In this document: one piece after another, positions 2,212-61,460 of the stretch
How the letters are laid out: each line of letters opens with the position of its first letter
How positions within the stretch are numbered: position 1 is the stretch's first letter
Assembly: GCA_964188305.1 (NCBI GenBank)
Contig: OZ076889.1
DNA from: Podarcis bocagei
Taxonomy: Eukaryota
Length of the DNA stretch: 64,000 bases
Reading direction: 5' to 3' (one strand)
Notes under the pieces: model-generated
Database searches by the model: none
The model's input: the letters and a program-made list of their open reading frames with translations, nothing else
What the model was told of the DNA's origin: nothing
Position numbers and translations under genes: made by a program

Positions 2212-2844
2212 CCATATTTTTCGCTCTATAACACGCACCCGACCATAACACGCACGTAGTTTTTAGAGGAGGAAAACAAGAAAAAAAATATTCTAAATGA
2301 AACAGTGGATGTATGATTTTTGTGGCTCATGCTGTGGCCACAGACATGTGATCTGACAGCGAGTTTGGAGTAGCCCAATGCAAAAATCCTGAGGATCCAT
2401 GTGGATCCATGCTTTGTAACCATGTTTTTGCACCACTGCGGCCCCAGGCAACAGTGGGTGCGTGATTTTTTTGGTGCAAGATGTAGCCATGGACATGCTA
2501 TGTGATCTGATGGTGAATTTGGGGTGACCCAGTGCAAAAATTCTGAGGATCCATGTGGATCTGTGCTTTACACTTGTGGAAGAGGCTCCTCTCCTCTCCC
2601 GCTTTGTTCCTTCAAAGAAGCAGGATCTCTGTCCCTCTCTCCTCCCCACTCAGCGGCTCTTCTCCCACTTTGCTGTTTCAAAGTGAGCCACGGAGGAGGA
2701 AAGGAAGGGGAACCATGGATCCTCTGCTCATGACTGCAGCAGATCCCCCCCGCCACCCGTAGGCATTCCCTCCATAACACGCACAGACATTTCCCCTTAC
2801 TTTCTAGGAGGAAAAAAGTGAGTGTTATGGTGCAAAAAATACGG
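2212..2844. mobile_element. Tc2-like (TcMar) non-autonomous element, copy 1, with a diverged ~150-bp internal duplication
   Basis: TA|CCATATTTTTCGCTCTATAACACGCAC ... GTGAGTGTTATGGTGCAAAAAATACGG|TA termini; extra subterminal CCATAACACGCAC copies. Confidence 0.85.
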
Positions 2845-5800
2845 TACATTTACTCTGCTCATTAACTGTTTGCCTTGAGGTGTTCTTCCAGTAACCCTAT
2901 CCATCCAAACACCAAGATGCTCCACAAGAAATTCTACTGTAGTGCATAGCTTTGCCTTCTTTAGGCACTTGTATAATTTTACTAGAAGCAATGCATAGAG
3001 CAATAAGCTAGGTGCTTGTTGGCACTTCATCTAATCCAAGAGTTGACCCCTAATTGCTTCCACATGTTACATAACAAAAAAGGTTACTTGGGTTGTTATA
3101 AATATTCATAGCATTGATATTTTATTTAGCATTTCATAATTAACCTATTATACATGCAGATACTTTTCTTATATATATTTCTAATCATAAGTATTACTAT
3201 TTATTATAATTTTAAAGTAGATTAAAAACAAAAGAGAATACACTTTTAAAATGTACCACAGAATCTGTGCAATACATCAACATAAAAGGCAGATCAATGT
3301 GGAAAAAAAGTTTCTTGATGGTACAAAGTTTGAATTCCACACCTTTGCTGAATGCAGATTGCAAGTTGTGATGTCCCCAAGCTGTAAGGATGTATGGCAG
3401 TGTGTCTACCAAACATGGGGGGTAGATATTTACATTTAAGTGAAAGGAGTATTTGACTTGGATCCAAGATGTTCTAAGTTAAGTCAAAGCAAGTAATTTA
3501 TCAGGCCCTAACAGTGCATGTCCAACTTAAATTGCTTTACACCAGACACACATTCATTTTGAAGGAGCCAGGTTGAAAATACACCTCTGGAACTCATCTT
3601 CAGAACCTTTTCTAGCACACGGTAATGCAAGTATTTCTTTAAAAACCGACAAGAAAATCTTCTAGTTTATGCAAAAAGCCATTGATTGTCAATTAAAACC
3701 AATCTAACATGATGTTGGGACAGAGCCAGTAAACCAACTTACTCTGCTGAATTACAGCAATCAACAGGTACTACTGAAATGTATCAGAGCCACAAGATCC
3801 CTGAATGAATACTGCATTTTTCCTCAGTGGGATATTCAAAATAATCAACTAACGAAAAAGTACCTAAACTTTATTTGCTTCACAGAAATGACAGTGTTCA
3901 AAAAATACTAGATTGTGGGTTGCTAGTGAAGTCTAATTGCAATTTATACAATTAGACACGTAGTTGAACAAATGTAACTTTTTTTTACTATAAATAACCT
4001 TTCAAAGGGTTAATAAAGTGAGGCTTTTTCAAGTTGTCAGTGCCAATTAACCTAGAATTGTGAAATAAGAAATGGGCTGCAGCTGTAAGAAGCAATGCTA
4101 ACTCCTGGGTCAATATGTTGGACAAGACAGATAAGCTCCAAAGACTAATTTTTGTAGGCCTGCTACAATTCAACTCATGAAACCACACTTCATATATAAA
4201 ACTGTCATTACTTTTGTATTTGTAGTCTTGGAGTACAATGTCTACTTTCAAAAACAAATAGCCTATTCACTCTTCAAAGAAAGGGAGAGGAACCTCTGGC
4301 TTGTGGGCTACGCTTAGCCTGCCAGGGGGGTTCCCTTTGGCTCATGATGCCATTTCTCCCCAAACCATGCCTACCTGTCACTCAGCTGACATAACTGGGT
4401 GATGTCAGCTGATGGGGGGGATGAGTTCAATCATGCTGACTGCTGGTGAAGCAGACCCCTGCAGAGAGCAAAACTGAAGTATCCACTAATTAGCTGGTGA
4501 GCAGAGTTCCATCCTACCAGGTCCTGCTTCATTTGTGGAGAACACAATGGCAAAGAAGACCCCTCTCCCCACACTGCAAGTCAACTCTGACAGGTGGGTC
4601 TGACAGCCCATGTATCAGTCACCTGACATTATGATGACATCATCTCCACCTCTGGCTGAAAGGCAAATGGATCTTTTGTGGCATATGCGTTCGCAGGCTG
4701 ATGCTGGAGCATACAGTTGCAGCCAATGATCAGACTGAGCAACCACGTTTGCCCGTCACAATAAGCAGCCCAAGTTGCTGTCTTATTGTGGTTCACTGTG
4801 CACAAATAATGTACTTGTGCACGTGGCCCAGCCATTTCCACTTCACTTCTTTCATAAGCGCAAGCAAGAGAAGCAAATCAGAAAACTACAATAAAGACAG
4901 GCTTCTTATTACATCCAAACACGGGATCACAGTTTCTTGCTTCACAAGAAGCCAGGATTTCTAAGCCAACAACAAACCATGACTTAAGGCTGGCGAACAG
5001 TTATGGCTTTTACAAAGCAACAAAGTTTAAAAAGGGTACAAGCCAATACTTAATCTAAATCTGCACCCTTAATATATTTAGATTAATGTGCCCAATAAAA
5101 CTTTTAAGAAGAATACATATAAAACCTGCAGGTCTTACATCCAGTATTTGGACATTAATAGAAAATTGAACTTATTTGCGGCTTCCTGGTTTGCTTCTCC
5201 CACATGTCTCAGGGGAGGAGTGAAGAGGGAGCGATTGGGAAGTGCGCAGCAGCATGCTCCTTATGCACAACAAACCATTAAAAGCCAGTAAATCTAAACA
5301 AAGGCACAGTGTAAGTTCCTCTTGTCCCACTAGGGGAATCAAATAAGCTGTGCATCTTTACAGGCAGACAACCCATTTTAGGTATCAAAAATAAGCCAGT
5401 GAACTTTTCCATCCCTAAGAAAAAGTGCAGAGGTTAATGGGTCTTCAGGTTACCCAATTGATGGAATAGGTCAAGAACAAACATATGCAGTACTACTGAA
5501 ACACAAACCACTTCACCATTCCAATTCAAGGATCAAGGAAAGGATTAATTGAATAAAGTCACTTGAAACAATCAAAACAATGGCAGACACTATACAAACA
5601 GCACATTTACACACTGATAATTGTTTCTCTCAGCAGGAAGCAAAAATGTCTATAAAGCAAATTATGGCTTTCTCTGTGAAGAGGAGTAACAAAATCCATT
5701 TGAAATAAAGGATGTTCTTACTGTCTTTGCTGTGTACACTGTTCTTCAACATTCTACTTAGGTACAAAGAGGATATTATTTCACTCTTTCATACTGTATG

Positions 5801-6064
5801 TCTTATTCCCAACTTTCTGTTCCATCTTCAAGTTAATGTGGAAGACTTACTTGAACCTATTTGATTAAGATTACTTATATGCCACTTTTCCAGCATCAGC
5901 TGTGCCCAAGGTGGCTTACAACAAACATTCAAAACATCCTATAATAATTATATGAAATGGAGGAGCATGTCAATAAATTTAAAAGCAGACCCCTGCTTTT
6001 AAACAATTTAACAAGCATAGAATAAATCCAATATTACTAAAAAACAAAAAAAAAGGTTTAAGTA

Positions 6065-6327
6065 CAGTGGTACCTCGCAAGACGAATGCCTCGGAAGATG
6101 AAAAACTCGCAAGACGAAAGAGTTTTTCGTTTTTTGAGTTGCTTCGCAAGACGAATTTCCCTATGGGCTTGCTTCGCAAGATGAAAACGTCTTGCAAGTT
6201 TGTTTCCTTTTTCTTAAAACCGCTTGAAGAGTTGCAGTTGCGACTTGACCGTGCTTCGCAAGACGAAAAATTCGCAAGACGAAAAAACTCACAGAACGAA
6301 TTAATTTCATCTTGCGAGGCACCACTG
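6065..6327. mobile_element. Tc1/mariner/pogo-type MITE (CAGTGGTACCT termini)
   Basis: TA|CAGTGGTACCTCGCAAGA ... TCTTGCGAGGCACCACTG|TA; internal repeats of TCGCAAGACGAA. Confidence 0.85.
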
Positions 6328-8298: not shown

Positions 8299-8437
8299 CT
8301 GTCCCGAAGGCTTTGGCCACCAGCCACGCTAGATTACAGGCGATTTTCGCTCTGTTGAAGTCGTAATGATCAAAGGGTTTGATGGCAGGGACAATGAACG
8401 TCTTTCTCATTTCCTTGACGTCTGCGGCATCCCCCAT
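8299..8437 (-). CDS. CAMSAP2: CAMSAP2 coding exon 1 (calmodulin-regulated spectrin-associated protein 2); gene continues beyond the left edge
   Basis: MGDAADVKEMRKTFIVPAIKPFDHYDFNRAKIACNLAWLVAKAFGT matches the CAMSAP2 N-terminus; 139 nt, then donor G|GTAGGT on the minus strand; syntenic with DDX59 and KIF14. Confidence 0.95.
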
Positions 8438-12493: not shown

Positions 12494-12505
12494 AACCAAC
12501 CCTTT

Positions 12506-32460: not shown

Positions 32461-33279
32461 ATGTTTGTTCCAAGGTCTATTAAAGTCAAGAGGAATGCTG
32501 GTGATGAGGGGACCTGCGTAACTAAGAAAAATAAGCCATCTCCAAGTGAATCCTCCCTTGAAAATGCCACAGACGTCCGAGATGCTAAGTCAGATACAAA
32601 AGACATGCCAAGCTCAGAGAGTGACTTGTCTGAACCAATGAAAAGAGACACTGAGCTGCACATCTCTCTGGATTCAGCTGCAACTCTTACTGAAGCAACA
32701 TTGGAAAATGCAAACAATGAGGACTCTTCTCTTGCTGAGGATCCCATAAAATCTTTCAGCAAAATGCAGCGTTGGCCACAGCCTGGGGAACCTGTCTGTG
32801 TGGTTTGTGGTCGTTATGGGGAATACATCTGTGACAAGACTGACGAAGATGTTTGTAGCTTGGAGTGCAAAGCCAAACACCTTTTACATATCAAAGAGGA
32901 AAAGGAAAACTCAAAATCTGCTAGCAGTTGTGAAAAAGCAGAGACTCGGTCCACGTTACTTGATGGTACTTACGTCTATGAAGAGAATCCATTTGTGCTA
33001 AGCCTTCAAGAGGAGCAGATTGAAAACTTAAAGCAGCAACTAGGCATTGCTGTTGAAGGTCAAGAAGTTGCAAGACCTATTGTAGAATTTGAACACTGTG
33101 GCTTCCCTGAAATTTTAAACACCAATTTGAAAAAATCAGGCTATGAAGTCCCAACTCCTGTCCAAATGCAGATGATCCCAGTTGGATTACTGGGCAGGGA
33201 TATCATGGCCACGGCTGACACTGGCTCAGGAAAAACTGCTGCTTTCCTGCTTCCTGTTGTAATTAAAGCCTTGGGAGAG
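32461..33279 (+). CDS. DDX59: DDX59 DEAD-box RNA helicase, coding exon 1 (HIT zinc finger, Q motif, motif I)
   Basis: [11 protein letters not shown] start; [28 protein letters not shown] zf-HIT; PTPVQ; ADTGSGKT; acceptor AG at 32448-9; donor GAG|GTAAAG. Confidence 0.96.
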
Positions 33280-34170
33280 GTAAAGTTTAAACCTGCATTT
33301 TCAAAAAGCTGTGGGAATTGTGCAGCACGCTCCTGTACATGTTTACTTAGAAGTAAATCCCAGTGCATTCAAGGGGATTTCTCTTTGGGAAACTCTGCAT
33401 TGAATTTCAACCTTAGTTGCACTGAGAATTCTAGAGAAATTATTTTTAGCTGTTTGTTTCTTCTTTGAACTTATGTCAGTTGACTTGCAAAAAGTGAATG
33501 TTTGGACAACAGTACAGTGCAAACTGATAGAATATCTAATATATTCTTTCAACTGTATACCTGTCAGTTGACGGGATAAACGATACAATTACTAAATCTG
33601 CCAATTGTCCTAAAGCGTCCTCAGTGTCTCTGCTTACACCTGTTGCTCAAGAGTTCAGCTGCAGTTCTGCAGTGGGGATCTTTTTATACACATTGAGGCT
33701 CCCCATTTGACTTCAAACCCTTTCAGGCTTCTAAATACACAGGCAGCAGCCACAAGTAGAAAAGGTTTTCTGCTGCAGAAATTACAGCTGAACTCTTGAG
33801 CAACTGGCACAAGCAGGGGGCAGTGACCTAAAAGCCCTGTCCCACAGCCCCTTTTTCATTTGCTTTACCTCTTCATATGAATAACCACTGAAGAGTGCTC
33901 TAATATTCAGAAATACTCTGTAACAGTTTGTCCACTTACTCTTATTTCTGTACTTAACAGTCTTAGTAGGGTGGGAGTAGATTTCCACAGTTTCTAATGT
34001 TACACTGTGACTATTTGCTGTCGTCTCCATTGACATCTGAATGAAAAGGATGTTGTTGAGCTAATCTGATATGAATTACAGTAACTGTTCTCTTATTTTC
34101 CCCTAATCTGATACTTTTAATTGAGAATGCAGATTGGCAACTCACAACTTTTTCCCACTTTCTGCTTCAG

Positions 34171-36959: not shown

Positions 36960-37765
36960 CAACAGGAATATTCAAAAGGGGTAACCAAAACGATTGAGTG
37001 GAGCAACTCCCCTAATGTGGAACCGTTTCAGTATTCTGGGCTTTATAGTTTAGAGAAAAACCAAGTAAGAGGTGGCATGATAGAACTGTGTAAGATTATG
37101 CATGGCATGAATAAAGTGGTTGGAGAAAGGCTTTTCTCCCTCTCTCATAATTGTTGAAAGATTCAGGACAGGCAAAACAAAGTACCGTATTTTTTTGCTC
37201 TATAAGACTCACTTTCTCCCTCCTAAAAAGTAAGGGGAAATGTGTGTGCGTCTTATGGAGTGAATGCAGGCTGCGCAGCTATCCCAGAAGCCAGAACAGC
37301 AAGAGGGATTGCTGCTTTCACTGCGCAGCGATCCCTCTTGCTGTTCTGGCTTCTGAGATTCAGAATATTTTTTTTCTTGTTTTCCTCCTCCAAAAACTAG
37401 GTGCGTCTTGTGGTCTGGTGCGTCTTATAGAGTGAAAAATACGGTAGTTATTTATACGGCTCATAGTTAAACTCTGGAATTCGCTCCCATATGAGACAGT
37501 GCTAGCCACCAACTTGGATGGCTTTAAAAGAGGATTAGACAAATTTGAAGTGGTTAAGGCTCTCAGTGGCTACTAGTCACAGTGGCTATGTTTTGCATCT
37601 GTGGCTGAAGGCTGTATGCTTCTGAATACCAGTTGCTGGCAACTGCAGGACCTCCTGTGCTCGGGTCCTGATTACAGCTTCCCACAGGCATCTGACTGAC
37701 TGCTGAAAGAACAGGATATTGGGCGAGATGGGCCATTGGCCTGAGCAGGGAGACTCTTCTTATGT
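36960..37765 (+). mobile_element. Old CR1 3' fragment interrupted by a Tc2-like MITE
   Basis: 'GLYSLEKNQVRGGMIE' CR1-like translation; CR1 sequence resumes after 37446. Confidence 0.7.
37185..37444. mobile_element. Tc2-like MITE, copy 2 (short, single-hairpin cargo)
   Basis: TA|CCGTATTT...CTATAAGACTCAC ... GTGCGTCTTATAGAGTGAAAAATACGG|TA. Confidence 0.9.
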
Positions 37766-38077: not shown

Positions 38078-38230
38078 GATAAGAAACTGTTCAAACCTCC
38101 TGTGCTGGTATTTGTAGAATGCAAACTGGGTGCAGATCTCCTGAGCGATGCTGTACATAAAATTACAGGCTTGCAAACAATTTCTATGCATGCTGATAAA
38201 TCACAGATAGAAAGAACTGCCATATTACAG
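38078..38230 (+). CDS. DDX59: DDX59 coding exon 5
   Basis: AG|[22 protein letters not shown]...ERTAILQ|GT; 153 nt. Confidence 0.95.
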
Positions 38231-38890
38231 GTTTGTAGATATCTCTGGTGTCCATTTTCTAAAAGATTCCTATTCTTAAGGCCGTAGTCCTGTACACATT
38301 TACTTGGGAGTAAGTCCCATTGGACTCTGCTGAATTTACTTCTGAGTAGATGTGTATAGGCTTTTACCGCTGAATTATTTGTACTTTCTTGCCACATTTT
38401 TAAAGCAGGTTGCAATTTTCTGTGAATGTCATGATTGCTTTGTATAGGTTCCAGTCCATCACAGTTCTGTTCTGTGCAGCATTCTGGATTGCTGCACAGA
38501 TGCTGCTCTCCAACCAAATTAAGCTGTCCTTTGTAAGCAGCAATGCCTCTCTCCATGTGAACCTACCCAGACCCTGAGATCATCATCTGAGATCCTTCTT
38601 TGTATTCCTCCTGTACGAGAGGTCTGGAGGGTGGCCACCTAAGAATGGGCCTCTTCTGCAGTGGAATGCTCTCCCTAGGGAGGTTTGGCTGGCGCCTTCA
38701 TTGTACACCTTTAGGTGCCAGGTTAAAATGTTCCTTTTTGACTAGGCCTTTGGCTGATTAACATCCGATACCCTTTTAAATGTGGCTGTGGGGGTATTGG
38801 GTTGTTTTTGTTTTTATTACGTATTTTGTTTTTTTTTATCTTGCATTTCTATGTTATGAACCACCCTGAGATCTACAGATTTTAATAAGT

Positions 38891-38980
38891 AGAATCATAG
38901 AATTGTAGAGGTGGAAGGGACCATGAGGGTCATCTAGTCCAACCCCCTGCCTTGCAGGAATCTTTTTGTCCAACATGGGG
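38891..38980 (-). mobile_element. CR1-tailed element abutting the assembly gap
   Basis: AGAATCATAGAATTGTAGAG...GTCATCTAGTCCAACCCC is the reverse of the CR1/SINE tail. Confidence 0.7.
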
Positions 38981-39115
38981 NNNNNNNNNNNNNNNNNNNN
39001 NNNNNNNNNNNNNNNNNNNNNNNNNNNNNNNNNNNNNNNNNNNNNNNNNNNNNNNNNNNNNNNNNNNNNNNNNNNNNNNNNNNNNNNNNNNNNNNNNNNN
39101 NNNNNNNNNNNNNNN
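38981..39115. other. Assembly gap (135 N)
   Basis: Run of n. Confidence 1.
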
Positions 39116-39647: not shown

Positions 39648-41332
39648 CCGTATTTTTCGCACCATAGGACGCACTTTTTCCCTCCTAAAAAGCAAGGGAA
39701 AATGTGTGTGCGTCCTATGGAGCGAATGCAGGGGGGGGAGGCAGGTGGGAAAAGCCCCCAAGAGCCGCACACAAGCTCCGTGCGCTCTTGCGGGCTTTTC
39801 CACAGGAGGGAGAAGGGACTGACTGGCCGCATCAGTCCCTTCTCCCACCTCCCAGGAAAGCCAGGAGAAGCCGTGCAGCCCTTTTAAAGTGCGCGCGGCT
39901 TCTGCTGGTTTTGCGGGAGGTGGGGGAATCCCCCCACCTCCCAGAGAAGCCAGGAAAGCCCTGCGCAGCGTCTCCCGGCAAGGAGACGCTGCGCGGGGCT
40001 AAAGGGGAAGGCAAAACAGCGAGCGGGATCCACCCCGCTCGCTGCCTTGCCTTCTTCCCTAGCCAGGAAAGCCCTGCGCAGCGTCTCCCGGCAAGGAGAC
40101 GCTGCGCGGGGCTAAAGGGGAAGGCAAAACAGCGAGCGGGATCCACCCCGCTCGCTGCCTTGCCTTCTTCCCTAGCCAGGAAAGCCCTGCGCAGCGTCTC
40201 CCGGCAAGGAGACGCTGCGCGGGGCTAAAGGGGAAGGCAAAACAGCGAGCGGGATCCACCCCGCTCGCTGCCTTGCCTTCTTCCCTAGCCAGGAAAGCCC
40301 TGCGCAGCGTCTCCCGGCAAGGAGACGCTGCGCGGGGCTAAAGGGGAAGGCAAAACAGCGAGCGGGATCCACTCCGCTCGCTGCCTTGCCTTCTTCCATA
40401 GCCAGGAAAGCCCTGCGCAGCGTCTCCCGGCAAGGAGATGCTGCGCGGGGCTAAAGGGGAAGGCAAAACAGCGAGCGGGATCCACCCCGCTCGCTGCCTT
40501 GCCTTCTTCCCTAGCCAGGAAAGCCCTGCGCAGCGTCTCCCGGCAAGGAGACGCTGCGCGGGGCTAAAGGGGAAGGCAAAACAGCGAGCGGGATCCACCC
40601 CGCTCGCTGCCTTGCCTTCTTCCCTAGCCAGGAAAGCCCTGCGCAGCGTCTCCCGGCAAGGAGACGCTGCGCGGGGCTAAAGGGGAAGGCAAAACAGCGA
40701 GCGGGATCCACTCCGCTCGCTGCCTTGCCTTCTTCCATAGCCAGGAAAGCCCTGCGCAGCGTCTCCCGGCAAGGAGATGCTGCGCGGGGCTAAAGGGGAA
40801 GGCAAAACAGCGAGCGGGATCCACCCCGCTCGCTGCCTTGCCTTCTTCCCTAGCCAGGAAAGCCCTGCGCAGCGTCTCCCGGCAAGGAGACGCTGCGCGG
40901 GGCTAAAGGGGAAGGCAAAACAGCGAGCGGGATCCACTCCGCTCGCTGCCTTGCCTTCTTCCATAGCCAGGAAAGCCCTGCGCAGCGTCTCCCGGCAAGG
41001 AGATGCTGCGCGGGGCTAAAGGGGAAGGCAAAACAGCGAGCGGGATCCATCCCGCTCGCTGCCTTGCCTTCTTCCATAGCTGCGCGCAACCCCTCCGCAA
41101 GGAGAGGCTGCACGGGGCTATGGCTTCTTTAGCGCTGCGCAGCGTCTCCCGGCAAGGAGAGGCTGCATGGGGCTAAAGGGGAAGCCAAAACTTGGCTTGC
41201 TCCATAGCTGCGAGCAACCCCTCCGCTGCTCTCTGGGCCTGGGGGGGGGGAAAAGATTTTTTTCTTGATTTCCCCCCCTAAAAACTGGGTGCGCCCTATG
41301 GTCCGGTGCGCCCTATGGTGCGAAAAATACGG
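39648..41332. mobile_element. Tc2-like non-autonomous element, copy 3, carrying a 113-bp tandem array
   Basis: 27-bp TIRs CCGTATTTTTCGCACCATAGG(A/G)CGCAC (26/27 identical); TA on both sides; lies in a DDX59 intron. Confidence 0.93.
39948..41077. repeat. Tandem array, 10 x 113-bp GC-rich double-hairpin unit
   Basis: Units start at 39948, 40061, 40174, 40287, 40400, 40513, 40626, 40739, 40852, 40965; four variable positions seen; degenerate partial units follow. Confidence 0.97.
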
Positions 41333-41490
41333 TAATTTCCTTTGTTGGAAATCTTGTCTTGTAACTTTTGATTATAAGACAAGCAACAGAATTCTTAATG
41401 TTTAATATTTATTTCTAGTTACATCTTGCACCTTAACAACAAGACAGTTTCAAGGAAGCTGAAATAATGTTTCTATATGCTTTGCATTAG

Positions 41491-41619
41491 GGATTATTTC
41501 AAGGCAAGTATGAAGTTGTCGTAAGCACTGGAGTCCTGGGACGTGGACTTGACCTTGTCAACGTTAAGCTGGTCGTGAATTTTGACATGCCATCAAGTAT
41601 GGATGAATACGTACACCAG
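41491..41619 (+). CDS. DDX59: DDX59 coding exon 6
   Basis: AG|[22 protein letters not shown]...DEYVHQ|GT; 129 nt; motif V. Confidence 0.95.
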
Positions 41620-46296: not shown

Positions 46297-46297
<1 letters not shown>

Positions 46298-46344: not shown

Positions 46345-46347
<3 letters not shown>

Positions 46348-47683: not shown

Positions 47684-48798
47684 ATGCCTATTTATATTGT
47701 TCCTAAGAAAAGCCATATTAGTGCACCTGGTGGATCTTCACAAAAGCATCCTCCAGAAAATGTCATTGCTAGAAACAGGTTTGCACAGACATTTACATCC
47801 CACACACTGGAGAATGAGGGAAGCAATCCTCAGTCACAGTCCCTGAGTAAGACCAAAGAAATAAATACGACCTATGTGCTTTCAGCCTGTAGCAAACTGG
47901 CTGACACTTCAGCTGCTTCTACGACTGAAGGCAGGCTGACACTCCAACGAAGAACTGTGACGAGCAAAGAACAATCTGATACAAATACAACACATGACAG
48001 TGAAAATACACGAGTGGAAAAAAGATTGACGCTGCAGCGCCGAACAAGGACTGCGTCAACTGAGAAGCACAAAACAAATATTCACGAAGCCAGAGCAGAA
48101 AAAGGAGACCCTCTTCCCCAGAAGAGTGGCGAAACATTGTTTCCACCAAAAATTAGCAGCAGTGACCCTCCATTTGTTAAGACTGGCCTTTTGTCACTTC
48201 AAGGCCTCACAGATGGAAAGAGAAATCCTGATATGAAAAGTGATGTACCTTTTAATCAGAATGGTTCAAGTGCTACTGGTAGTTACACACCTTTAAGATA
48301 CAAGACAGTTGTTGGTGATTCTCAGAGTAAAAACAAAGTTCCTAGACCATCATTCTTAACTGTAGGAAAACTTGATGAAAGGACGTCTGTATTAAAACTA
48401 GCTGAAAAGCATAATTCCAGTAAGGAAAATGGAACTGAAAGTCTGCAAAATAGATTTATTAAGAATGAAAATCTGGAAAAGCAGAAGACACCAAGGAAAG
48501 GGTCAACAGAAGGAATGAAATTCACCTCCAGATGTGGAGCTGCTCAGCATGCCAAGACTCCTGCTGCCCCAAGCATAAAGAATAAGATTCTGTGTCCTCA
48601 AACAATATCAGCCAAGAAATCTGGTACTAATGAATTTACTCTAAATAGAAGGTTGCAAGAAAATACCACATATACTCAACAAACTGCTTCACAGAAAGAA
48701 GATACTCTAATGCAGAACATATGTGGTAAAGAAGACCCTTTCAAAATAGAAAACAGCAAAGTGACTGTAGCTGTGCGAATACGACCCTTTAGTGTCAG
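47684..48798 (+). CDS. KIF14: KIF14 coding exon 1 (long N-terminal extension and start of the motor domain)
   Basis: Long ORF ending EDPFKIENSKVTVAVRIRPF; acceptor AG at 47564-5; donor CAG|GTATAT; phase 2. Confidence 0.9.
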
Positions 48799-49974
48799 GT
48801 ATATAACCATTATTTTTTTTTTACTAATATGTGAAATTATACAAGTTGTTACCATGATATTGAGTAGCATAACATGCTCTCCAACCACTTAGATATATTA
48901 CCCAGTTTAATTTCCATTGTGTCTGTATACAAACTGCTGCACTTCTCTTTATTTCCATTGTCCACTTTATAAGGGATCTGTGTGTTCTAACTAAGGCTGA
49001 GACAATTTAACAACTATATGAAATAAATAAAATGGGATGATAGTTGATACTTTGTTAGCTCAGTAGCCCACCTTGCAAGGGAAGCTAATCCAATTCCCTT
49101 TGCATAACTCCATTTTAATAAACCTCAGATTTTGGGGGCAAGAGTATAGTCATATCCAGCACTGTTGTTCCCTTGTGCAGCAGACTTCTAGTTGTGCAAC
49201 AGAACTTGTCATTCCTCTTCCCTGCAGCCCACCATGCATTCACAAAATCTGCTCCAGGGAATTAAAAGACCCTCTGGAGCACAATTTGAGGGCTCACTCA
49301 AGAGGACAGGAAGGGGAAGTCCTGTTGCAAAAGGAACTCTGCATGCACAGTAATGTCCAGCTTTTTGTCCCCCTGTATAAATTTTTTAAAGAAATGCTAT
49401 GCAGCACAGTGGCTTTTGAATTTTTTATCAGTCTTCTGATTTTTAGGCAACAGATCTGCAGATGCTAGCTTACATTTTAGAAACCGGACACTTGCCATGG
49501 AGTTTATATTAGTAGTTAATTTAGTCTTTGATCTTGGAACTATATGTTTTATAAATATATAAATTATTTTCTTTGGCTGATTTACTGTAATCCTGGATTG
49601 GTTTTTGTTACACGTTAGCATTGGATCCTAAACAGTATATTTATGAATTATTTTGATCTAGGTATATTTTGTACATTAGTTCTATGAATGGCTGATGTAG
49701 TATACTGAACTTCAATACAGTCTATCTCTATGCTAACATTTTACATATAATGAAATTTCAAAAACCTTTAAGGAGAAAATTCATATAGAAAATTCATATG
49801 GCTGATGCACAATTAACCTGAAGACTGCCACATATTATAATGATTTAGTTACAACATCAATTAGACAATTTAGATTAAATTTGGTTTATAAGATCAGTTA
49901 CAAAGCTGAATGTGTTCAGTGTTTTGTCGTCCCTCGCCCCCTATAACTAACATTTCTTTTGTGCCTTTATTCAG

Positions 49975-50226
49975 AGATAAGAATGAAGAAACATTACAAG
50001 TGGTTTCCATGACAGGGCAAGAGACTGTTGTGCACCATCCAAATACAAAACAAATCTACAGTTTCACTTTTGACTTCTCATTCTGGTCTTTTGATAAATG
50101 TCAGAATTTTGCAAGCCAAGAGATGGTGTATCAGTCTCTGGCAGTACCTCTCCTAGAAAGAGCCTTTGAAGGATACAACACCTGCCTTTTTGCATATGGA
50201 CAGACTGGTTCTGGAAAGTCATACAC
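49975..50226 (+). CDS. KIF14: KIF14 coding exon 2
   Basis: FTFDFSFWS...[19 protein letters not shown] (P-loop); AG/GT bounded. Confidence 0.95.
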
Positions 50227-50594
50227 GTAAGTTGGACTGGAAGTGTTCCATTTCTGCTGCTGTTGTTGACACCCAATACATGTCATATCCAGATGCTTTT
50301 TTGTCATATGTTTGTTTCTTAAGTGAATGAGATTATTATTGAAATGGAAGACTGACGTGAATGAAGCCAAACTAACAGTACAGAGAACATTTTGTTTGAA
50401 TCTCTCTGAAGAAAATTATGGTATGTTTTAAACAGAAAAACCACCTATCTTCAGGACTGTGATTATCTAGTGCTTTAGGGTAACAGTAACTAAAAGACTA
50501 AGATCCAAAGCAGGAATTTCCTTGTTCAGATCTCATGTATGCTGTTAAGTCACTAGGCTCATAGGAAGCTCTCTTATACCAAGACAGATCATTC

Positions 50595-51475: not shown

Positions 51476-52181
51476 GTATTGCTGCAGCATTACTTTTCTT
51501 TCTGAACTTATTGAGGCTGCTCCACTTTCTTCGGGAGTACATGGAACCACCTTTGGGTTCACTTTTGGGCATCACTGTTGTGGAGGCACTGTTAATGTGA
51601 ATCAACACTTCCACATAGATGCATTACATGTGATTGCAATGATTTCCACAGTGGCAGCAGTGCTTTTTTGGAAGTATCCTGCAACAATTGCATGGAGGTT
51701 TTTTGAACTGGGTGATAAATGCTGTTAAGCTGATTGGCTCAATGCTTTTCTTGAGGGCAGGCATGTGGAGGGGTACAGAATAGTACTCTCTCTCTCTATA
51801 TATATATATATATTACTGGTATTCCCTCAGAAATGATTGAACTGGGTAAAAGCCGACCCTGAAATTTGCCCCATCCTTGTGGCTGCTTCATTCAACCCAT
51901 ACTCACCAGCAGGGTGGGATTTCATCACAGCTTCCATGTGGCTGTGCGTAGGAAGCAAATTGCCAGAGCAACATATTTCTAAAGTACTTGATATTTCTGT
52001 GGTTTTTTGGGTTGTTGTTTTTTACCATAAAATAAAAACAGAAATCAATATGTACAGACTACAGCTCCTCTGTTGGCTAGCGAGGCTGATCTTACACCTT
52101 AATAACTGTTGATATATTCTATTGCTGTACTGTGTTTCTTGGGTGTATGGGTAGCAATAAAGCTGTTGTTTTTTTAATTAG

Positions 52182-52280
52182 ACTGATTTTCATCTTGGGA
52201 TGAGCTATTTTGAAGTCTACAATGAAAAAATTCACGACTTGCTAGTCTACAAAGCTGAAACTGGACAGAAGAAACAGCCT
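52182..52280 (+). CDS. KIF14: KIF14 coding exon 4
   Basis: MSYFEVYNEKIHDLL; 99 nt. Confidence 0.95.
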
Positions 52281-52472
52281 GTAAGTAACTAATTACGTTC
52301 TGAACATTGACGTATTGTCTGTGTATAAAACAGTAACTCTCCGGATGTGGGCTAGTCTCATAACCATAAGGAATTTGATCCTTTCTGTTCTTGGCTCTTA
52401 CAAGCATAGAAAAAGATGGGCATCTGTTCAAAGGCTAATGTATGAGCCTCAGTGAGGTTATATAGGGGTGTA

Positions 52473-53379
52473 CCGTATTTTTCGCCCCATAAGACGCACC
52501 GGCCCATAAGACGCACCTAGATTTTTGGGGGGGAAATAAAGGAAAAAAATTTTATTTCCCCCCCAGGTGCGCTGCGCTACACCAGGAGCTTGGGGCGTGC
52601 GGAGCTCAGCGCGCCCCAAGCTTCTGCGTGCCGGCAAGGTCTCCGCTAGCGTGGGAGAGCCGGGCGCCTCTCCCAGGGCTAGCGGACCCCTGCGCTAATC
52701 CAGAAGCTTGGGGCAAGCTGAGGTCAGCGCGCCCCAAGCTTCTGCGTGCCGGCAAGCAGTCCGCTAGCCCTGGGAGAGCCGCGGGGCTCTCCCAGGGCTA
52801 GCGGATCGCTGCGCTACACCAGGAGCTTGGAGCGTGCTGAGCTCAGCGCGCCCCAAGCTTCTAGGTGCGCGCAAGCAGTCCGCTAGCCTTGGGAGAGCCG
52901 CGGGGCTCTCCCAGGGCTAGCGGATCGCTGCGCTACACCAGGAGCTTGGAGCGTGCTGAGCTCAGCGCGCCCCAAGCTTCTAGGTGCGCGCAAGCAGTCC
53001 GCTGCCGCCCCAAGCCTCGCGCACCCGGTGGAACCTCCTGCCGGGTGCGTGAGGCTTGCAGACACTCGCCCGAAGCAGGGGGAGCCCTCCCGAGGGCTCC
53101 CCGTGCTTCGGGCGACAGGCTGCCGCCCCAAGCCTCACGCACCCGGTGGGACCTCCTGCCGGGTGCGCGAGGCTTGCAGACACTCGCCCGAAGCAGGGGG
53201 AGCCCTCCCAAGGGCTCCCCGTGCTTTGGGCGACAGGCTGCCGCCCCAAGCCTCGCGCACGCGGTGGGACCTCCTGCCGGGCGCGCGAGGCTTGCAGGCA
53301 TTCGCCCCATAAGACGCACCCCGATTTCCCCTTCATTTTTGGAGGGGAAAAAGTGCGTCTTATGGGGCGAAAAATACGG
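52473..53379. mobile_element. Tc2-like non-autonomous element, copy 4, carrying two different hairpin arrays
   Basis: Perfect 27-bp TIR CCGTATTTTTCGCCCCATAAGACGCAC; TA flanks; internal ~119-bp and 118-bp tandem units. Confidence 0.93.
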
Positions 53380-54038
53380 TATATAGCCGCTTTCGATCCT
53401 GGCAGCATTTCTGCTGCACGGCACTCTCAGCCCCGTATGGGACTTCCAGCTGGCCATTTAAAGAGCTTCTACTTTGACTTGCAGACTTTTAGTTTTACTC
53501 ATCTCTATTTTGTTTTGATTCCCTGTTTTTGTAGGTTTTGCTTCTTAAGCTGTGCTTGCATACTGTTTTGCATGGTGTGATGCTTGCAGTGAAAAGTTTT
53601 TATTGCTCTTTATGTTTTTTAAAATAAAATGTATCATAAAGATGCATTCTGTTGTTTTCAGGGTTTTCAAAAGTTATTTTGTGGCAAAATAAAACAAAAA
53701 CCATTTGTTTTGTTATCTGTGGTTTACTAGAGTTTTCACATGGTTATAATAAAACGCTTCAGTCTCTTATTTTTCCTCTGTCCCCATGCCCTTTTTAGTT
53801 TTTTCATTTGTGATGTCCAGTTGTTTGGCACATTATTCAGCCCTCAGGTTCACATGTGCAAATATGGATAAGGATACCAATGTCCCTGGTGTTCTGGGAT
53901 CTCAGATTAGCAAACACTGAGTTGGAGAAGTTTCAGTCCTTCTACTTACGGATAATAACTTGTTAGATAGTTCCATAAATGTGCTCTAAATCGCTGAAGC
54001 TTTTAAAACTGATCAACATTGACTTTTCTGATTAACAG

Positions 54039-56591: not shown

Positions 56592-56736
56592 TGTGGACTC
56601 TCCTTCACTGGACATTTTTAAGCAGAGGTTGGATGGCCATCTGTCATGGATGCTTTGGTTGAGACTCCTGTATTGTAGGGGGTTAGACTAGATAATCCTC
56701 AAGGTCCCTTTTAACTGCACAGTTCTATGATTCTAT
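56592..56736 (+). mobile_element. CR1 3' end fragment
   Basis: GACTCTCCTTCACTGG...TTTAAGCAGAGG...GTTCTATGATTCTA. Confidence 0.75.
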
Positions 56737-56863
56737 AAGTGGCCTTTGTGTGTGTTAGCACAAGTTGTTCTAGAAGCATTTATTTTATTTTATTTTATTT
56801 TAAAAACCCTCATGGTGCTCACAACTGTTTTCTCAAAAATTTCACATCCTCTCTTTTTATCAG

Positions 56864-56971
56864 AATTGGCTGCAGTTAGGAAATAAACACAGAGCTACTG
56901 CTGCCACAGGAATGAATGACAAGAGTTCTCGATCTCACTCTGTTTTCACCCTGGTGATGACACAAACAAAG
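56864..56971 (+). CDS. KIF14: KIF14 coding exon 7
   Basis: RATAATGMNDKSSRSHSVF (switch I); 108 nt. Confidence 0.96.
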
Positions 56972-57739
56972 GTACTGGGCATTTTGGTTTGCTTTTAAAC
57001 TTACTTTTTTATAACATTTTGTAAATGCAGGTCAAAAATTCAACAAAATTATTCACCCCCTCTCTTCCCTTTTGCATAAAGGGGAACTTTTTAATTTTTT
57101 AAAAAATGTTCAATAATGCAGCAGACGTTGAGCAGAAAATTCACTTATTGATATAAAACCTGGGAAATAATGGTTTGGATCTCAAGGCGTCTGGCACAAG
57201 TGGAGAGACTTAATTCAAGCATCAACAAAAGTTGTTTAATCTTACATAAAGTAATTTTATGTATGGGCAGAGTGACTGCACACTATGCTCCCCATTTTTC
57301 CTTTATACTTTTGTTTTCTACTGTGAACATAATGAAAGCATTAGCTTCCTATTGATGTGGTTGCTAACTTGTTTTATGAAGTTTTAAATGTTAGAGAATT
57401 AGAGCAGGTTAAGGGGGAGATTGTCTAGGTTTCTTTTTTTTAGGTTATACAAATATTCATGATCTCCGGCTTTGTTTTTAAACTGTTCATAGGCTGCAAG
57501 TCAGGTATAGCACAGGAGCATAGGAAATCATTGGTCCATCTAGAGTAGTACTGTATACACTGAATGGCAGCAGCTCCAGAGTTTTAGGCAGGACTCTCCC
57601 AGCCCTATCTGGAGATGCCGGATATTGAATCTGAGACCATCTGCATGTAAGCCAGATACCCTACCACTTACCTACATCCCTTCCTCGCAAGCTGCATCCC
57701 TTCCCAACATGTCCAATTGTAGTCATTTCTTTATTTTAG

Positions 57740-57856
57740 ACGGATATTGTGGAAAAGGAGGAACGCGAACACAGAATTATCAGTCGTGTGAACCTGGTAG
57801 ACCTTGCAGGCAGTGAGCGCTGTTCTACAGCTCAAACCACTGGAGAAAGACTGAAG
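57740..57856 (+). CDS. KIF14: KIF14 coding exon 8
   Basis: SRVNLVDLAGSER (switch II); 117 nt. Confidence 0.96.
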
Positions 57857-58814
57857 GTAAAATGTATATAAGGTACTCTGCTGGGCCTTATATTCTCAGA
57901 AACTGGGCAACTGTCCAGCGGAGCCACCTTGTTAATCCCCACGCCAAGCAAATGGTACTGCAACACAACATGCAATATTATGGCATTGAACTTGAAACAC
58001 AAAGAAGAACCACTTAACAAGGTCTTTTATACAGTGTCAGATTACTGGTCTACCTAGCTCATTACTAGTCCTTTCTACACCCACAGCCTCTTGCCACTTT
58101 ATCCCATTTCTAGATCAGATTCAAGAAAGAAAAGAAAAAACTATGGGCAAGTTCAGCCATCCTGGGGCCCATATTCCCAGGACAACCAGCCATGGGTTCT
58201 GACTTGACCTGACCCCAGTTATGTTTATGGTTCTTCAGTAGCAGCTCCTGAGAATACAGTGGCTGGGAAAGGTGACACCGTGAACTGGTATCGGGACGCC
58301 GTAACAAGAGATGTGCCAGATTGCAACTTCAATATATATGCCCCCTGTTTATGTGCATCTATATAGCCAATTGTAAAATACTATTCTTCCTGTAACAAAT
58401 GTGTGAACTAGATGGATTAAGCATCTTCCGCCTGTGCGCACTTTAAGACATGGAATATTAGTATTGTTAGATACAGGTAGTGATTTGGGTATTGGAATAT
58501 ATAGATGGTGAGGTGACTAGTAGAATGCCTTGGTTATATTTAGGCAAATTATTTATTAATTTATCATTTATTAAATTTGTATACCGCCCTATACACTCAG
58601 GTATCAAAATAATTAATTGTAAAAGTGGCCCAGAATTGAATCTAAATGATGGGGATGTCTCATGCCTCTGAAATGAACAGCAAATAGAAGTGGATATTCC
58701 TCTGCCTTGTGCAATAATGTAACTGGGTTTATGCACCTATATTGTGGCGCCTGTAGGAAAAACTAGGGCATAATATGTTGATGCTATTGACTGTTTCTCT
58801 CCTTCTCAATATAG

Positions 58815-58933
58815 GAAGGTGTGAGTATAAATAAATCCCTGTTAACTCTGGGGAAAGTTATTTCTGCACTGTCTGAGCAAAATCAGAGCAGGAGGAAGGT
58901 GTTCATTCCATACCGTGAATCTGTTCTTACATG
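58815..58933 (+). CDS. KIF14: KIF14 coding exon 9
   Basis: [19 protein letters not shown]...[10 protein letters not shown]. Confidence 0.96.
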
Positions 58934-60005
58934 GTATGTACATATTTTGTGTGCCATAACAGCTTTAAAAAAAAGCTTCATTTTTTTGTAGTGATCCTTT
59001 CTTTCTTGGCAGCATTTAATTATTATCAAAGTTAATAGATTTTCATAGAAACACAGCTTTTAATGGTAAAAAATGGAATTAGATCCAGTTATGTACCACA
59101 TTAATCAAACCACTCTTCCCCCTCTCCACCCATTCATTTTGGTCCTCTGCTTTTCTATTTCCTGACAATGGAACTGAGCTAATTTTCAAAGTGATTTTGA
59201 TTGATCCTGTAGGGCATAAAACTGCAACTGGTAGAGTACATTTACTTTATTCTCAACTGGTTATTCTTGCATATAGGGAAAAAATGGATAATGCCTTAAT
59301 ATTTGGGGCCTATTTCCACTAGCACTTTCAGCTAATATCTGTGGGAAAGGCACTGCTTTTAAGCCAGATAGTGCTTAGACCTCTGAGTTCTGAAGGCCCC
59401 CCAAAACATTCCTTTCTTCAGCACTAGGGGTGGTGGGGTGAGGCATGCATTCTTTGGCCCGGGCTGCACTGTTTCCTGAACAAGTCTTTGGGAAACAGCC
59501 CAGGCCAAGCTGAATGAAGTACGCCTAACAGTTGTGCACCACTTTTGACTTTTGCTGTAGTCCCCACACAGTTTTCTCAGCACTTTGGGGAAAGTCAAGA
59601 GGCCTCTCTAATGGTGCACACACCTCTGGGTATCTGCCTGTTCCAGTACTGGGAGGGATGGGAGGTTTATGAGTTACGCTTCCCAACTCTGTTCTGATGA
59701 GAAGATGCCCCCTGCAAAAAACCATTGGTGTTTCCTTTCCGCTAATGCTAGCAGGAGTCCAAGGGGAAGTGGAAGGTGAATGGTGACATGTTGTTTGGAG
59801 GAAGGAAACCAATTGGGTAGCGAGGTGAATGACCTGGATCTGATTCCACAGGTGAAGAACTTAGGCATCCTTATTCTAATCTACATAAAGAATTGGATCC
59901 TGCAAAATGCTCAAAACATGTACTGTACTTTGTTGTATCTTCAGAGAATATAGTCTTAAAATAAATCCAGACTGGGGAAAAACATTTATTTTCTTTCAAA
60001 TGTAG

Positions 60006-60178
60006 GCTGTTAAAGGAAAGTCTTGGTGGAAACTCAAAAACTGCTATGATCGCCACAATTAGCCCTGCCGCAAGCAATATAGAAGAAACTCTGAGTACCC
60101 TTCGATATGCTAAACAAGCTTGTTTCATAATCAACATTGCCAAAGTCAACGAAGACATAAATGCAAAACTAATCCGAG
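60006..60178 (+). CDS. KIF14: KIF14 coding exon 10
   Basis: [21 protein letters not shown]...ETLSTLRYA (end of the motor domain). Confidence 0.96.
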
Positions 60179-60878
60179 GTAAGCCTGAGAACTATTTTGC
60201 TTCTTGCCGAAATAGCCCTATGCCAAGTTGCTCCTAGATTTCTTACAAAGTATACACTTACTAAGAGGAAGTAATTCAAAAGAAAGCTGCATCAATTTAT
60301 GGACAAATGCTTGCAATTGAAACCCACAAAAATGGCAAGAATCATTATTTTAATGATAATATGATGAAATTGCTTATTGGTAGTCTGAAGTGCAAAATAC
60401 TTTCAAACAGCTCAGAGGTGATCACAGCTCCCTTACAAGCATGTCTGTATGTTACATGTTTGCAAATATGTGGGGTTTTTTTTACACTCATACTGTACAT
60501 TTTTAGGTGTGTAGTTGATATGCTGCATTTTTTTAAAAAAACCAATACTTGCATTTATTCAATATGCAGGTAATTTTTAAATTGCAAACATTGTGGGTAG
60601 GATTCATCTAACAAACCCTGTCAGCAGAAGCCCTGCACAAGGACTTCCACTTGCAAAATGGGTCCTCCCCCTGTGTTCCACGAAATTGGCTGGGGAAGGC
60701 AGAAGAACTCCCAGAACAGCAGAGAGGGGGAGGGGAGTAGGTCCATTCTGTCTGGCAAGCTGAAATGCTTGTGTAGCTATAACATTTGTCACTGTGAGAC
60801 TCATAGATGCCAATCCAGAATATTTGCCAATATAAGAGATGCCATTTTGACTAGCTGCCGAACTCTCGTTAAATGTAG

Positions 60879-61026
60879 AATTGAAAGCTGAAATTGAGAA
60901 ACTGAAATTGGCTCAGAAAAACGCTCAGAATGTTGACCCTGAAAAACAAAAGCTTTATATGCAAGAAATAACATCTTTAAGAGTGAAGCTATACCAGCAA
61001 GAGAGGGAGATGGCAGAGATGCAAAG
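60879..61026 (+). CDS. KIF14: KIF14 coding exon 11
   Basis: LKAEIEKLK...QQEREMAEMQ coiled coil; frame-compatible AG/GT. Confidence 0.92.
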
Positions 61027-61178
61027 GTACTAGTACTTGATGTCTTCTCAAAAATACAGACTGCTAAAGGAAGGTTCCCCTCTATTTTTTTTTACTATTG
61101 AAATATAATCTATACAGTTAATTGTGCATTATTGCATAAAGATTGCACATAAATAATAAATAAATAAATAAATAAATA

Positions 61179-61460
61179 CTGTATTTTTTGCTCTATAAGA
61201 CACACTTTTCCCCTCCTAAAAAATAAGGGGAAATGTGTGTGCGTCTTATGGAGCGAATGCAGGCTGCGCAGCTATCGCTGAAGCCAGAACAGCAAGAGGG
61301 ATTGCTGCGCAGCAATCCCTCTTGCTGTTCTGGCTTCAGCGATAGCTGTACAAAGCCTCTTCAACAACATTTGATTCAGAATATATTTTTTCTTGTTTTC
61401 CTCCTCTAAAAACTAAGTGCGTCTTATGGTCGGGTGTGTCTTATAGAGCCAAAAATACAG
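61179..61460. mobile_element. Tc2-like MITE, copy 5, with a perfect 80-bp palindrome
   Basis: TA|CTGTATTTTTTGCTCTATAAGACACAC ... GTGTGTCTTATAGAGCCAAAAATACAG|TA; close relative of copy 2. Confidence 0.9.

Follow-up and report, generated by a model that had tools for sequence, protein, structure and literature searches.

Hairpin-Built Interiors and Tandem Arrays in a TA-Flanked MITE Family at DDX59 and KIF14 of a Lizard

Genes and Elements in the Window

The window, a stretch of 64,000 nucleotides from Podarcis bocagei (contig OZ076889.1), covers introns of DDX59 and KIF14 and holds five TA-flanked elements of 260-1685 bp. All five were recovered where the first-pass annotation had placed them, with TA on both sides of every copy (5/5) as in a TA target-site duplication, and no sixth was found. 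The previously reported split in orientation was reproduced, copies 1 and 4 lying on the plus strand and copies 2, 3, and 5 on the minus strand.

Copy 1 (2212-2844, plus strand) is an old MITE of 633 bp, the interior of which is not hairpin-rich and consists of two tandem units of ~150 bp (2301-2569, plus strand; 75-84% identity) with a ~190-bp tail behind them. Copy 2 (37185-37444, minus strand; 260 bp, one internal hairpin) and copy 3 (39648-41332, minus strand; 1685 bp, ends near-intact) are located in DDX59 introns, and copy 3 terminates ~160 bp before an open frame at 41491 that holds DDX59 helicase motif V. Copy 4 (52473-53379, plus strand; 907 bp) lies in an intron within the KIF14 motor domain. 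Copy 5 (61179-61460, minus strand; 282 bp), which belongs to the copy 2 type and whose ends show CpG decay, lies on the downstream side of the KIF14 switch II exon and is probably intronic as well. A gap of N (38981-39115), with SINE-like sequence to its left, is situated inside a DDX59 intron between copies 2 and 3, 1.5 kb from the former and 0.5 kb from the latter; since it meets no element or exon, continuity or reading frame across it is irrelevant to the finding.

The open reading frames of all five elements were devoid of Pfam domains, and no transposase was found in the window. An origin of the interiors from transposase or other protein remnants was rejected, none having been found there.

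Anatomy and Divergence of the Ends

The terminal inverted repeats are 27 bp long and perfect in copy 4. When the window was scanned with the 13-nt terminus, nine matches with at most two mismatches were obtained (0.44 expected); the tenth terminus, at 37185, carries one extra T. The 12-nt core gave 20 matches (2.9 expected), exactly four per element, in agreement with the extra subterminal copies of the core that had been noticed earlier. End A is composed of an outer core and a direct inner core 17 bp in, and end B of an outer core and an inverted inner core ~45 bp in. Around each end ~85 bp are common to the family and give a gap-free alignment of the five copies. A search of the window for additional copies of either end or of the interiors returned none.

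Within an element the core variant is uniform across all four sites (AACAC at each of the four in copy 1, AGG at each of the four in copy 3). Comparison between interior types gave identities of 66-86% for end A and 71-81% for end B, and the subtypes of end A go with the interior, copies 1, 2, and 5 standing against copies 3 and 4; end A of copy 1 is 84-86% identical to those of copies 2 and 5. The single chassis with interchangeable cargo that had been proposed for these elements does not agree with ends that are 14-34% different from one interior type to another and that covary with the interior.

Hairpins and Tandem Arrays

The interiors of copies 2-5 had been described as built from fold-back stems, and their predicted folds (z of -6 to -13) lie beyond those of shuffled sequences and of the background (-0.23 +/- 1.13). 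For the interior of copy 1 the z was -1.6, without hairpin excess, which keeps it outside the hairpin-rich group as the earlier description had implied. The hairpin of copy 2 (37281-37359) has a loop of 9 nt and a DNA fold z of -10.6, and the palindrome of copy 5 (61269-61348) has a centre of 4 nt enclosed by 38 perfect pairs (z -12.2).

Tandem arrays are present in two copies, as had been claimed. The main array of copy 3 (39948-41080) holds ten units of 113 bp at 98% identity with two hairpins per unit, the second hairpin of the first unit being located at 40007-40054. It is bordered by two more double-hairpin units, W and X (39739-39947; ~97-112 nt), and by degenerate edge units (41081-41215). 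Copy 4 contains array A (52570-53003; 119 bp x 3.7, 90% identity) and array B (53001-53307; 118 bp x 2.6, 94% identity, z -12.7), both made of double-hairpin units. All arrays are unidirectional, and the inverted symmetry of the two ends of an element is confined to the 27 bp and the cores. Along the main array of copy 3 the variants of the unit run a a a b c a b c b c', and this repeating order together with the 98% identity suggests that the array grew in place.

Compensated changes between units within one array were looked for and none were seen in copy 3, in array B, or in array A after realignment. The whole window, searched on either strand, gave no Rfam match at the gathering score.

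Relatedness of the Interiors

The first-pass annotation had sorted the interiors into four types with no evident similarity. This no longer holds for the 113-bp unit of copy 3, which when aligned with copy 5 scored higher than each of 200 shuffles (0/200; z 5-7), the reversed-sequence control giving a low score; judged by this alignment, the unit shares ancestry with the hairpin of copies 2 and 5, the second hairpin of the unit being the matching part. The assignment of copies 2 and 5 to one interior type was retained, each having a single hairpin unit homologous to the unit of copy 3.

In the 21-pair stem shared by the copy 3 unit and copies 2 and 5 all four differences (4/4) are double-sided and keep the pairing, and when the partners were slid by 1-3 columns as a control the number of double-sided pair-keeping changes fell to zero. 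The covariation score of the stem, calculated from five rows representing three lineages, was 0.205 as compared with 0.093 for shuffles (0/500). The stem of the copy 3 edge units (41181/41192) is in a state intermediate between copy 5 and the main unit. Stem identity (17/21) is about equal to the identity of the ends, which fits vertical descent. The earlier suggestion of fold-back synthesis is supported in so far as these double-sided, still paired differences speak for hairpins in which one arm serves as template for the other.

Nothing significantly similar emerged from the shuffle tests for the two arrays of copy 4, the W and X units of copy 3, or the interior of copy 1. Only the copy 3 unit could be linked to another interior type, that of copies 2 and 5. 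Two further candidate relationships noticed by eye were dropped, namely that of arrays A and B via a shared CGCCCCAAGC-type stretch (15-24 of 200 shuffles as good) and, within copy 3, that of unit X with unit M (7-12 of 200 shuffles as good). A derivation of the interiors from the element's own ends was likewise rejected, local alignment yielding nothing significant against shuffles. The matches in these own-end alignments were boundary overlaps and, in copy 1, low-complexity matches of 10-14 nt. The interiors of copies 4 and 1 and units W and X may have arisen independently or by capture. In copy 1, where ends close to those of copies 2 and 5 enclose an unrelated, non-hairpin interior, the comparison looks like replacement and not drift.

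Insertion of Copy 4 and Abundance of the Family

The state of the copy 4 site was read from organisms A, B, and E, no contig of organism F running across the junctions. In organism B, a related species, a 1523-bp contig joins 52469 to 53379 and thereby bypasses 909 bp, i.e., the 907 bp of the element plus 2, leaving an empty site with a single TA; organism E, another related species, likewise lacks the insertion at this site. In a second individual of organism A (same species) both junctions of copy 4 are crossed and the site is filled. Copy 4 is thus a real and recent insertion, and the search for an orthologous empty TA site that the first-pass annotation had called for ended in a precise one in organism B and an empty one in organism E. 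With this precise empty site and the positions in DDX59 and KIF14 introns, the view that TA-duplicating MITEs have brought hairpin arrays into introns was upheld.

The array units and ends of copy 4 are highly repeated in all four runs, and for the units the contig depths of organisms A and B sum to 200-7000x that of single-copy sequence, values that are depths and not copy numbers. In other contigs the end-A sequence CCCCCCCAGGTGCG adjoins the second A unit (52690), and the A unit at 52765 continues into the start of array B; such alternative unit joins suggest other copies with different unit counts. The loose contig ends outside both termini of copy 4 agree poorly with each other (0.36-0.40) and therefore belong to many different loci. 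At loose ends other sequences also adjoin versions of end B that match the copy 4 version at 90% or better, which favors some real exchange of interiors.

Origin of the Hairpin Interiors

We consider it somewhat more probable than the opposite that an abundant MITE family inherited a palindromic module, remodelled it in place, and then moved it as a whole. The five elements would represent one very abundant family of non-autonomous, TA-duplicating MITEs of the Tc1/mariner type, with the cores as likely binding sites of a transposase supplied in trans. The region between the ~85-bp ends would be dispensable for movement without being foreign cargo, and would go back to a palindromic module of the ancestral MITE that was remodelled in each subfamily. 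An arm may be re-copied repeatedly from its partner arm, with template switching, fold-back synthesis, and hairpin-directed repair as candidate mechanisms, so that a change in one arm would recur in the other. Whole double-hairpin units of ~100-120 bp would also multiply in tandem, through slippage or unequal exchange, and subfamilies would drift until their interiors can no longer be aligned. The composite element would finally be mobilised whole and leave GC- and CpG-rich minisatellites in introns. That the interiors of copies 4 and 1 share this origin with the others is presumed here. Since the ends diverge alongside the interiors and at least two of the supposed types share ancestry, descent with remodelling is indicated and not swapping or capture.

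Alternatively, the hairpins may have been created afresh in each subfamily through fold-back or snap-back synthesis during repair of the excision break, which would leave the interiors unrelated. At least ten different hairpins with loops of 0-9 nt are present, most unit types are without detectable mutual similarity, and the ends themselves contain small hairpins (the inverted inner core of end B and, in copies 3 and 4, a stem of a G-run and a C-run in end A), all of which would suit such repeated creation. Repair templated nearby should, however, have left interiors significantly similar to their own ends, which they are not, and the sole testable pair, formed by the unit of copy 3 and the hairpin of copies 2 and 5, proved homologous. 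We regard this alternative as unlikely.

Somewhat more doubtful is the capture of existing palindromic tandem repeats or host DNA by a MITE that then spread them. It would account for copy 1, whose non-hairpin interior is unlike the interiors of its closest relatives, and a model of this kind was proposed for the Xenopus Tc1/mariner MITE miDNA4 (summarised in PMC12628747). On the other hand, none of the interiors occurs outside the elements in the window, and the unit of copy 3 descends, by the alignment above, from the hairpin that the short form seen in copies 2 and 5 already possesses.

A structure under selection, with hairpins kept because a folded single strand aids the copying or movement of the element or because the host makes use of them in introns, e.g., as small-RNA precursors, is more doubtful again. 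Pairing survives four double-sided changes and the unit lengths are alike (113, 119, and 118 bp) despite unrelated sequences, but copying from arm to arm in a DNA palindrome yields double-sided changes without selection, and old copies decay. The absence of Rfam matches from the window speaks against this reading, as does the fact that the copy 4 stretch occurs in none of the runs recorded as RNA. That the arrays or elements are misassembled is very improbable, given that independent contigs span both junctions of copy 4, that the exact empty site is present in other species, and that the same fine anatomy recurs in five separate elements, even if tandem arrays of 98% identity are hard to assemble and a gap lies 0.5 kb from copy 3.

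A bolder reading would make the hairpin interior a working part of the element instead of a passenger. A folded single-strand intermediate might copy arm from arm in each round and so renew the pairing with every transposition, and the family would then plant CpG-island-like palindromic minisatellites in lacertid genes, with unit types expanding by species. We offer this reading as a conjecture that is probably wrong.

Implications

It is recognised that satellites can arise from transposons by way of tandem-repeat MITEs, and how the repeats of such MITEs are born, by capture or by growth in place, is debated. The present family may permit a direct test, since it includes a short form with one hairpin that is homologous to the unit of a ten-unit array form. 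Its value for such a test may lie in the double-sided stem differences between the two forms and in at least one array-bearing copy that was inserted after a close species split. On the practical side, the family is very abundant, resides in introns of essential genes, and adds CpG-island-like, hairpin-forming DNA with its young copies; such sequence can disturb assembly, replication, and methylation calls, and perhaps splicing.

Comparison With Known Elements

The literature was searched for a lizard or lacertid MITE with hairpin arrays and none was found, and the end and core sequences, when searched as text, matched unrelated primers only. Among lizard elements the closest in appearance are TcMar-N4_AC and TcMar-N6_AC of Anolis, which are MITEs with TA duplication and ends of 23-25 bp that start with CCGTAT and contain TATAA (PMC3014272). 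TcMar-N4 was reported to be similar to the Tc2-related frog element DNA5_Xt, and an autonomous partner of the Anolis MITEs was not found (PMC3014272). The family described here matches their ends in the initial 6 nt and in TATAA only, and hairpin arrays were not reported for the Anolis elements (PMC3014272). The evidence on a putative Tc2-group affinity of the lizard family is indirect, consisting of these shared motifs and of the reported likeness of TcMar-N4 to DNA5_Xt.

Foldback-type elements, e.g., Tetris of Drosophila virilis, are also non-autonomous, have internal repeats and secondary structure, and seed tandem arrays (PMC4079207). Their long inverted ends are made of tandem subrepeats (PMC4079207), whereas the lizard arrays are unidirectional and lie between short ends. 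Assignment to the Foldback elements (FB, Tetris) was therefore rejected, inverted halves of subrepeats being absent from the unidirectional arrays.

The DTC84/pearl-type elements of bivalves resemble the lizard family in that conserved flanks form a "cassette" for core repeats of variable unit number, and the palindrome in each of their units was proposed to be a hotspot of length change (PMC3879986). They differ by an AA target duplication, a microsatellite tail, and a palindrome of only 12 nt (PMC3879986); the lizard elements have a TA target and 27-bp inverted ends, and their whole units are hairpins.

For Xmix/Xstir of Xenopus (Hikosaka and Kawahara 2004) a later source describes repeats that come from a MITE interior and stem-loops that were invoked for array formation (PMC12628747). 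Host and element are different, and in the model outlined there two neighbouring elements are joined (PMC12628747), in contrast to the lizard family, in which arrays grow inside single elements with intact ends and TA duplication.

miDNA4 of Xenopus tropicalis (Scalvenzi and Pollet 2014) is a Tc1/mariner MITE with an internal satellite, and is like the lizard family in its TA-type target, in an interior that is either a monomer or an array of variable length, and in its high copy number, as summarised in two later sources (PMC12628747, PMC9659126). The lizard family differs in having units of one or two long GC-rich hairpins and several unit types, two of which are linked by double-sided stem changes. 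Capture of an existing repeat was proposed for miDNA4 (PMC12628747), a model without support in the lizard family. A variable-number array between conserved mobile ends, the hallmark of tandem-repeat MITEs, is found here with one unit in copies 2 and 5 and ten in copy 3, and the family is a clear lizard case of the known kind of repeat-carrying MITE represented by miDNA4, Xstir, and DTC84.

Anatomy of the five elements

Five TA-flanked MITEs were found at the positions claimed for them by the first-pass annotation (copy 1, 2212-2844; copy 2, 37185-37444; copy 3, 39648-41332; copy 4, 52473-53379; copy 5, 61179-61460), each with TA on either side, and the claimed orientations (copies 1 and 4 on the + strand; copies 2, 3 and 5 on the - strand) were borne out. 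Allowing ≤2 mismatches, a 13-nt terminus gave nine matches in the window where 0.44 were expected; the tenth terminus (37185) has one T too many. The 12-nt core CATAAGACGCAC gave 20 matches against 2.9 expected, four of them in every element. At one end of each element (end A) the inner core is direct and lies 17 bp inside the outer core; at the other (end B) it is inverted and lies ~45 bp inside, forming a subterminal hairpin. Neither the ends nor any of the interiors recur elsewhere in the window, no Pfam domains were found in the ORFs of the five elements, and the window had no Rfam matches.

The earlier reading held that one Tc2-like chassis carries interchangeable hairpin cargo, with four interior types of no evident similarity. 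The feature is real and that reading partly right, but neither a constant shell nor the unrelatedness of all four interiors held. All five copies could be aligned gap-free over ~84 bp (end A) and ~86 bp (end B). Between elements of differing interior type, identity was only 66-86% at end A and 71-81% at end B; the pair with a common interior, copies 2 and 5, reached 84% and 94% at their two ends. By its end-A spacer the set falls into copies 1, 2 and 5 on one side and copies 3 and 4 on the other, and core variants are shared within elements: AACAC occurs at 4/4 sites in copy 1 and AGG at 4/4 sites in copy 3, which has an extra change at both end-A sites. Because of the end identities, the spacer split and these within-element variants, the five elements are diverged subfamilies in which ends and interior change jointly.

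A different TA-flanked MITE of 263 bp (6065-6327) has ends starting CAGTGGTACCTCGCAAGACGAA and about six internal CGCAAGACGAA-type cores, two of them within 16-bp repeats reported by TRF. As in the main family, the end core is repeated inside the element.

Homology between the copy 3 unit and the copy 2/5 hairpin

In an initial word-based search, copies 2 and 5 were the only ones to be linked. Using a softer-scored alignment, with 200 dinucleotide shuffles and the reversed sequence as controls, the main 113-bp unit of copy 3 was homologous to the copy 5/copy 2 interior (0/200 shuffles as good, z 5-7). Every other unit pairing, with arrays A and B in copy 4, units W and X in copy 3, and copy 1 included, gave no significant similarity in the shuffle-tested alignment. 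The homologous part comprises a GCTGCGC..GCTA stretch and, after it, a 21-bp stem. Both stem arms are GAAGCCAGAACAGCAAGAGGG in copies 2 and 5; in the copy 3 unit the left arm is GAAGGCAAAACAGCGAGCGGG and the right arm is complementary except for a 2-nt bulge. All four stem differences (positions 5, 8, 15 and 18) are altered on both arms with pairing kept. In one degenerate edge unit of copy 3, position 5 matches copy 5 and position 8 matches the main unit. The four double-sided changed pairs compare with none when partners were slid by 1-3 columns, and the covariation score of 0.205 (0.093 shuffled) was reached in 0/500 shuffles, the sample being a small one of three lineages. One further double-sided change (A.T to T.A), in the outer stem, distinguishes copy 2 from copy 5.

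Hairpins, arrays and base composition

The interiors were folded as single-stranded DNA and z-scores were obtained for each interior; 150 random windows from the remainder of the sequence gave a background z of -0.23 ± 1.13. Hairpin richness far beyond shuffles, as had been claimed for the interiors of copies 2-5, was found in copy 2 (z -10.6), copy 5 (z -12.2), copy 3 (z -10.5 for the 113-bp unit, -3.5 to -8.3 outside the array) and copy 4 (A units, z -4.0; B units, z -12.7), and 113-nt windows slid over copies 2-5 mostly gave z -6 to -12.8. The outcome named beforehand as refuting the claim, interiors with no hairpin excess over shuffles, was therefore not obtained for copies 2-5. Such richness was not found in the interior of copy 1 (z -1.6), which holds two diverged tandem units of ~150 bp each. 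The copy 3 array has ten 113-bp units at 98% identity, and the copy 4 arrays have 3.7 units of 119 bp at 90% and 2.6 units of 118 bp at 94% identity. Unit variants in the copy 3 array recur in a repeating order, which points to recent multi-unit duplication.

The stem of copy 5 (61269-61348) has 38 perfect pairs around a 4-nt centre, its ends are CpG-decayed (CTGTA at both), and it diverges from copy 2 by 6-16%. Since the stem is perfect despite this decay and divergence, homogenisation of the arms after insertion is suggested, though only suggestively, by this one copy. The interiors of the two young copies, 3 and 4, are CpG-island-like (39732-41246, GC 0.65, CpG observed/expected 0.73; 52557-53293, GC 0.71, observed/expected 0.77; 0.35 window-wide) and jointly hold 189 of the 979 CpGs in the window.

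Origin of the interiors

The copy 3 unit and copies 2/5 agree at 17/21 stem positions, about the level of identity seen in their ends, and the simplest reading is that an ancestral MITE already holding the hairpin would have given rise by descent to both forms, the hairpin unit having been multiplied to ten copies in one lineage. The double-sided changes show that neither stem arm evolves independently of its partner. Template switching, by which one arm is corrected from the other, is a well-established source of mutation in DNA palindromes of bacteria and yeast and needs no selection; the copying could occur at replication, in hairpin-directed repair or, as the first-pass annotation suggested, in gap repair after excision. 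The same remodelling may also have produced the copy 4 units and the interior of copy 1, or these may have been newly created or captured. Since copy 1 has ends similar to the copy 2 and copy 5 ends, it most resembles a replacement.

Mobility of copy 4 and abundance of the family

Contigs from four public sequencing runs were placed on 51900-53950, junction data being obtained from another individual of the source species (organism A) and two related species (organisms B and E); in organism F no contig reached the junctions. Contigs of organism A span both copy 4 junctions. The proposed check for empty TA sites in relatives, run at copy 4, revealed an exact empty site in organism B, where a 1523-bp contig connects 52469 to 53379, because the 909 bp skipped equal the 907-bp element plus one TA. 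The site is also empty in organism E, with a slight flank difference.

Summed contig depth of the termini was 2.4e5-8.9e5 against ~13-26 for single-copy flanks in three runs, and the copy 4 array units reached 200-7000 times flank level in organisms A and B and much less in E; as such sums are not copy numbers, they are read solely as a family that is very abundant and whose level differs between species. Loose ends past both termini (26-64 contigs, in poor agreement) show that numerous distinct loci are involved. There are also contigs where the end-A sequence (CCCCCCCAGGTGCG) directly adjoins the second A unit and where an A unit at 52765 continues into the start of array B; we read these as other subfamily copies differing in unit number. 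Some real interior diversity on similar ends exists, since other sequences adjoin an end B that resembles the copy 4 one by at least 90%.

Scaled to single-copy flanks, the summed depth of the copy 4 array B units (52935-53279) was ~4 times higher in organism B than in A, and the MITE ends differed only ~1.3-fold, a hint that one unit type has expanded in a species-specific way. A separate repeat just upstream of copy 4 (52038-52175) had summed depths of 100-970 against ~13-26 for single-copy neighbours in three of the four runs.

Gene context and assembly gap

An ORF on the + strand (32461-33468) encodes a zf-HIT domain and the opening part of a DEAD domain, and DDX59 helicase motifs were located in + strand open frames at 34075, 35760, 38078 (to 38284), 41491 and 41890, identifying the gene as DDX59. 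Kinesin motifs were located, also on the + strand, in frames 49910-50227 (P-loop), 56804-56995 and 57740-57868, preceded by a 402-aa ORF (47684-48892, +) whose open frame ends in the start of the motor domain; this gene is KIF14. Both genes are on the + strand in head-to-tail order, with the N-terminal coding exon of KIF14 beginning just ~5.5 kb past the last DDX59 motif frame.

Copies 2 and 3 are housed in DDX59 introns and copy 4 in a KIF14 motor-domain intron; copy 5, downstream of the KIF14 switch II exon, is presumably intronic. Copy 3 ends (41332) ~160 bp upstream of the frame at 41491, which holds helicase motif V; the end of this 1.7-kb hairpin-array copy is near the likely 3' splice site of DDX59 (41332-41491).

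The sole run of N (38981-39115) lies 1.5 kb past the end of copy 2 (37444) and 0.5 kb ahead of the start of copy 3 (39648). Because the nearest DDX59-motif frames are at 38078-38284 and from 41491, the gap is intronic and touches no element or exon, so continuity or reading frame across it is irrelevant to the MITE finding. SINE-like sequence (CATAGAATTGTAGAGGTGGAAGGGACC..., 38890-38980) reaches the left edge of the gap, which may have arisen at a repeat.

Comparison with known systems

In Anolis, TA-flanked MITEs have ends starting CCGTAT, and for one of these families, TcMar-N4, a link to a Tc2-related frog element was reported, with no autonomous partner found (PMC3014272). Tc2 is a candidate label for the main family here, for which the Anolis CCGTAT-end MITEs are the one line of support. 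Papers on such hairpin-array MITEs in lacertids were not found in a literature search. Internal tandem repeats are well documented in other MITEs, including miDNA4, Xstir (Xenopus), DTC84, pearl (bivalves) and Tetris (Drosophila) (PMC12628747, PMC9659126, PMC3879986, PMC4079207), and the flanks of DTC84 were already termed a "cassette" for internal repeats by its authors (PMC3879986). Less ordinary in comparison with these known repeat-bearing MITEs are that whole units are long hairpins, that the composition is CpG-island-like, and that two subfamilies are tied by double-sided stem changes.
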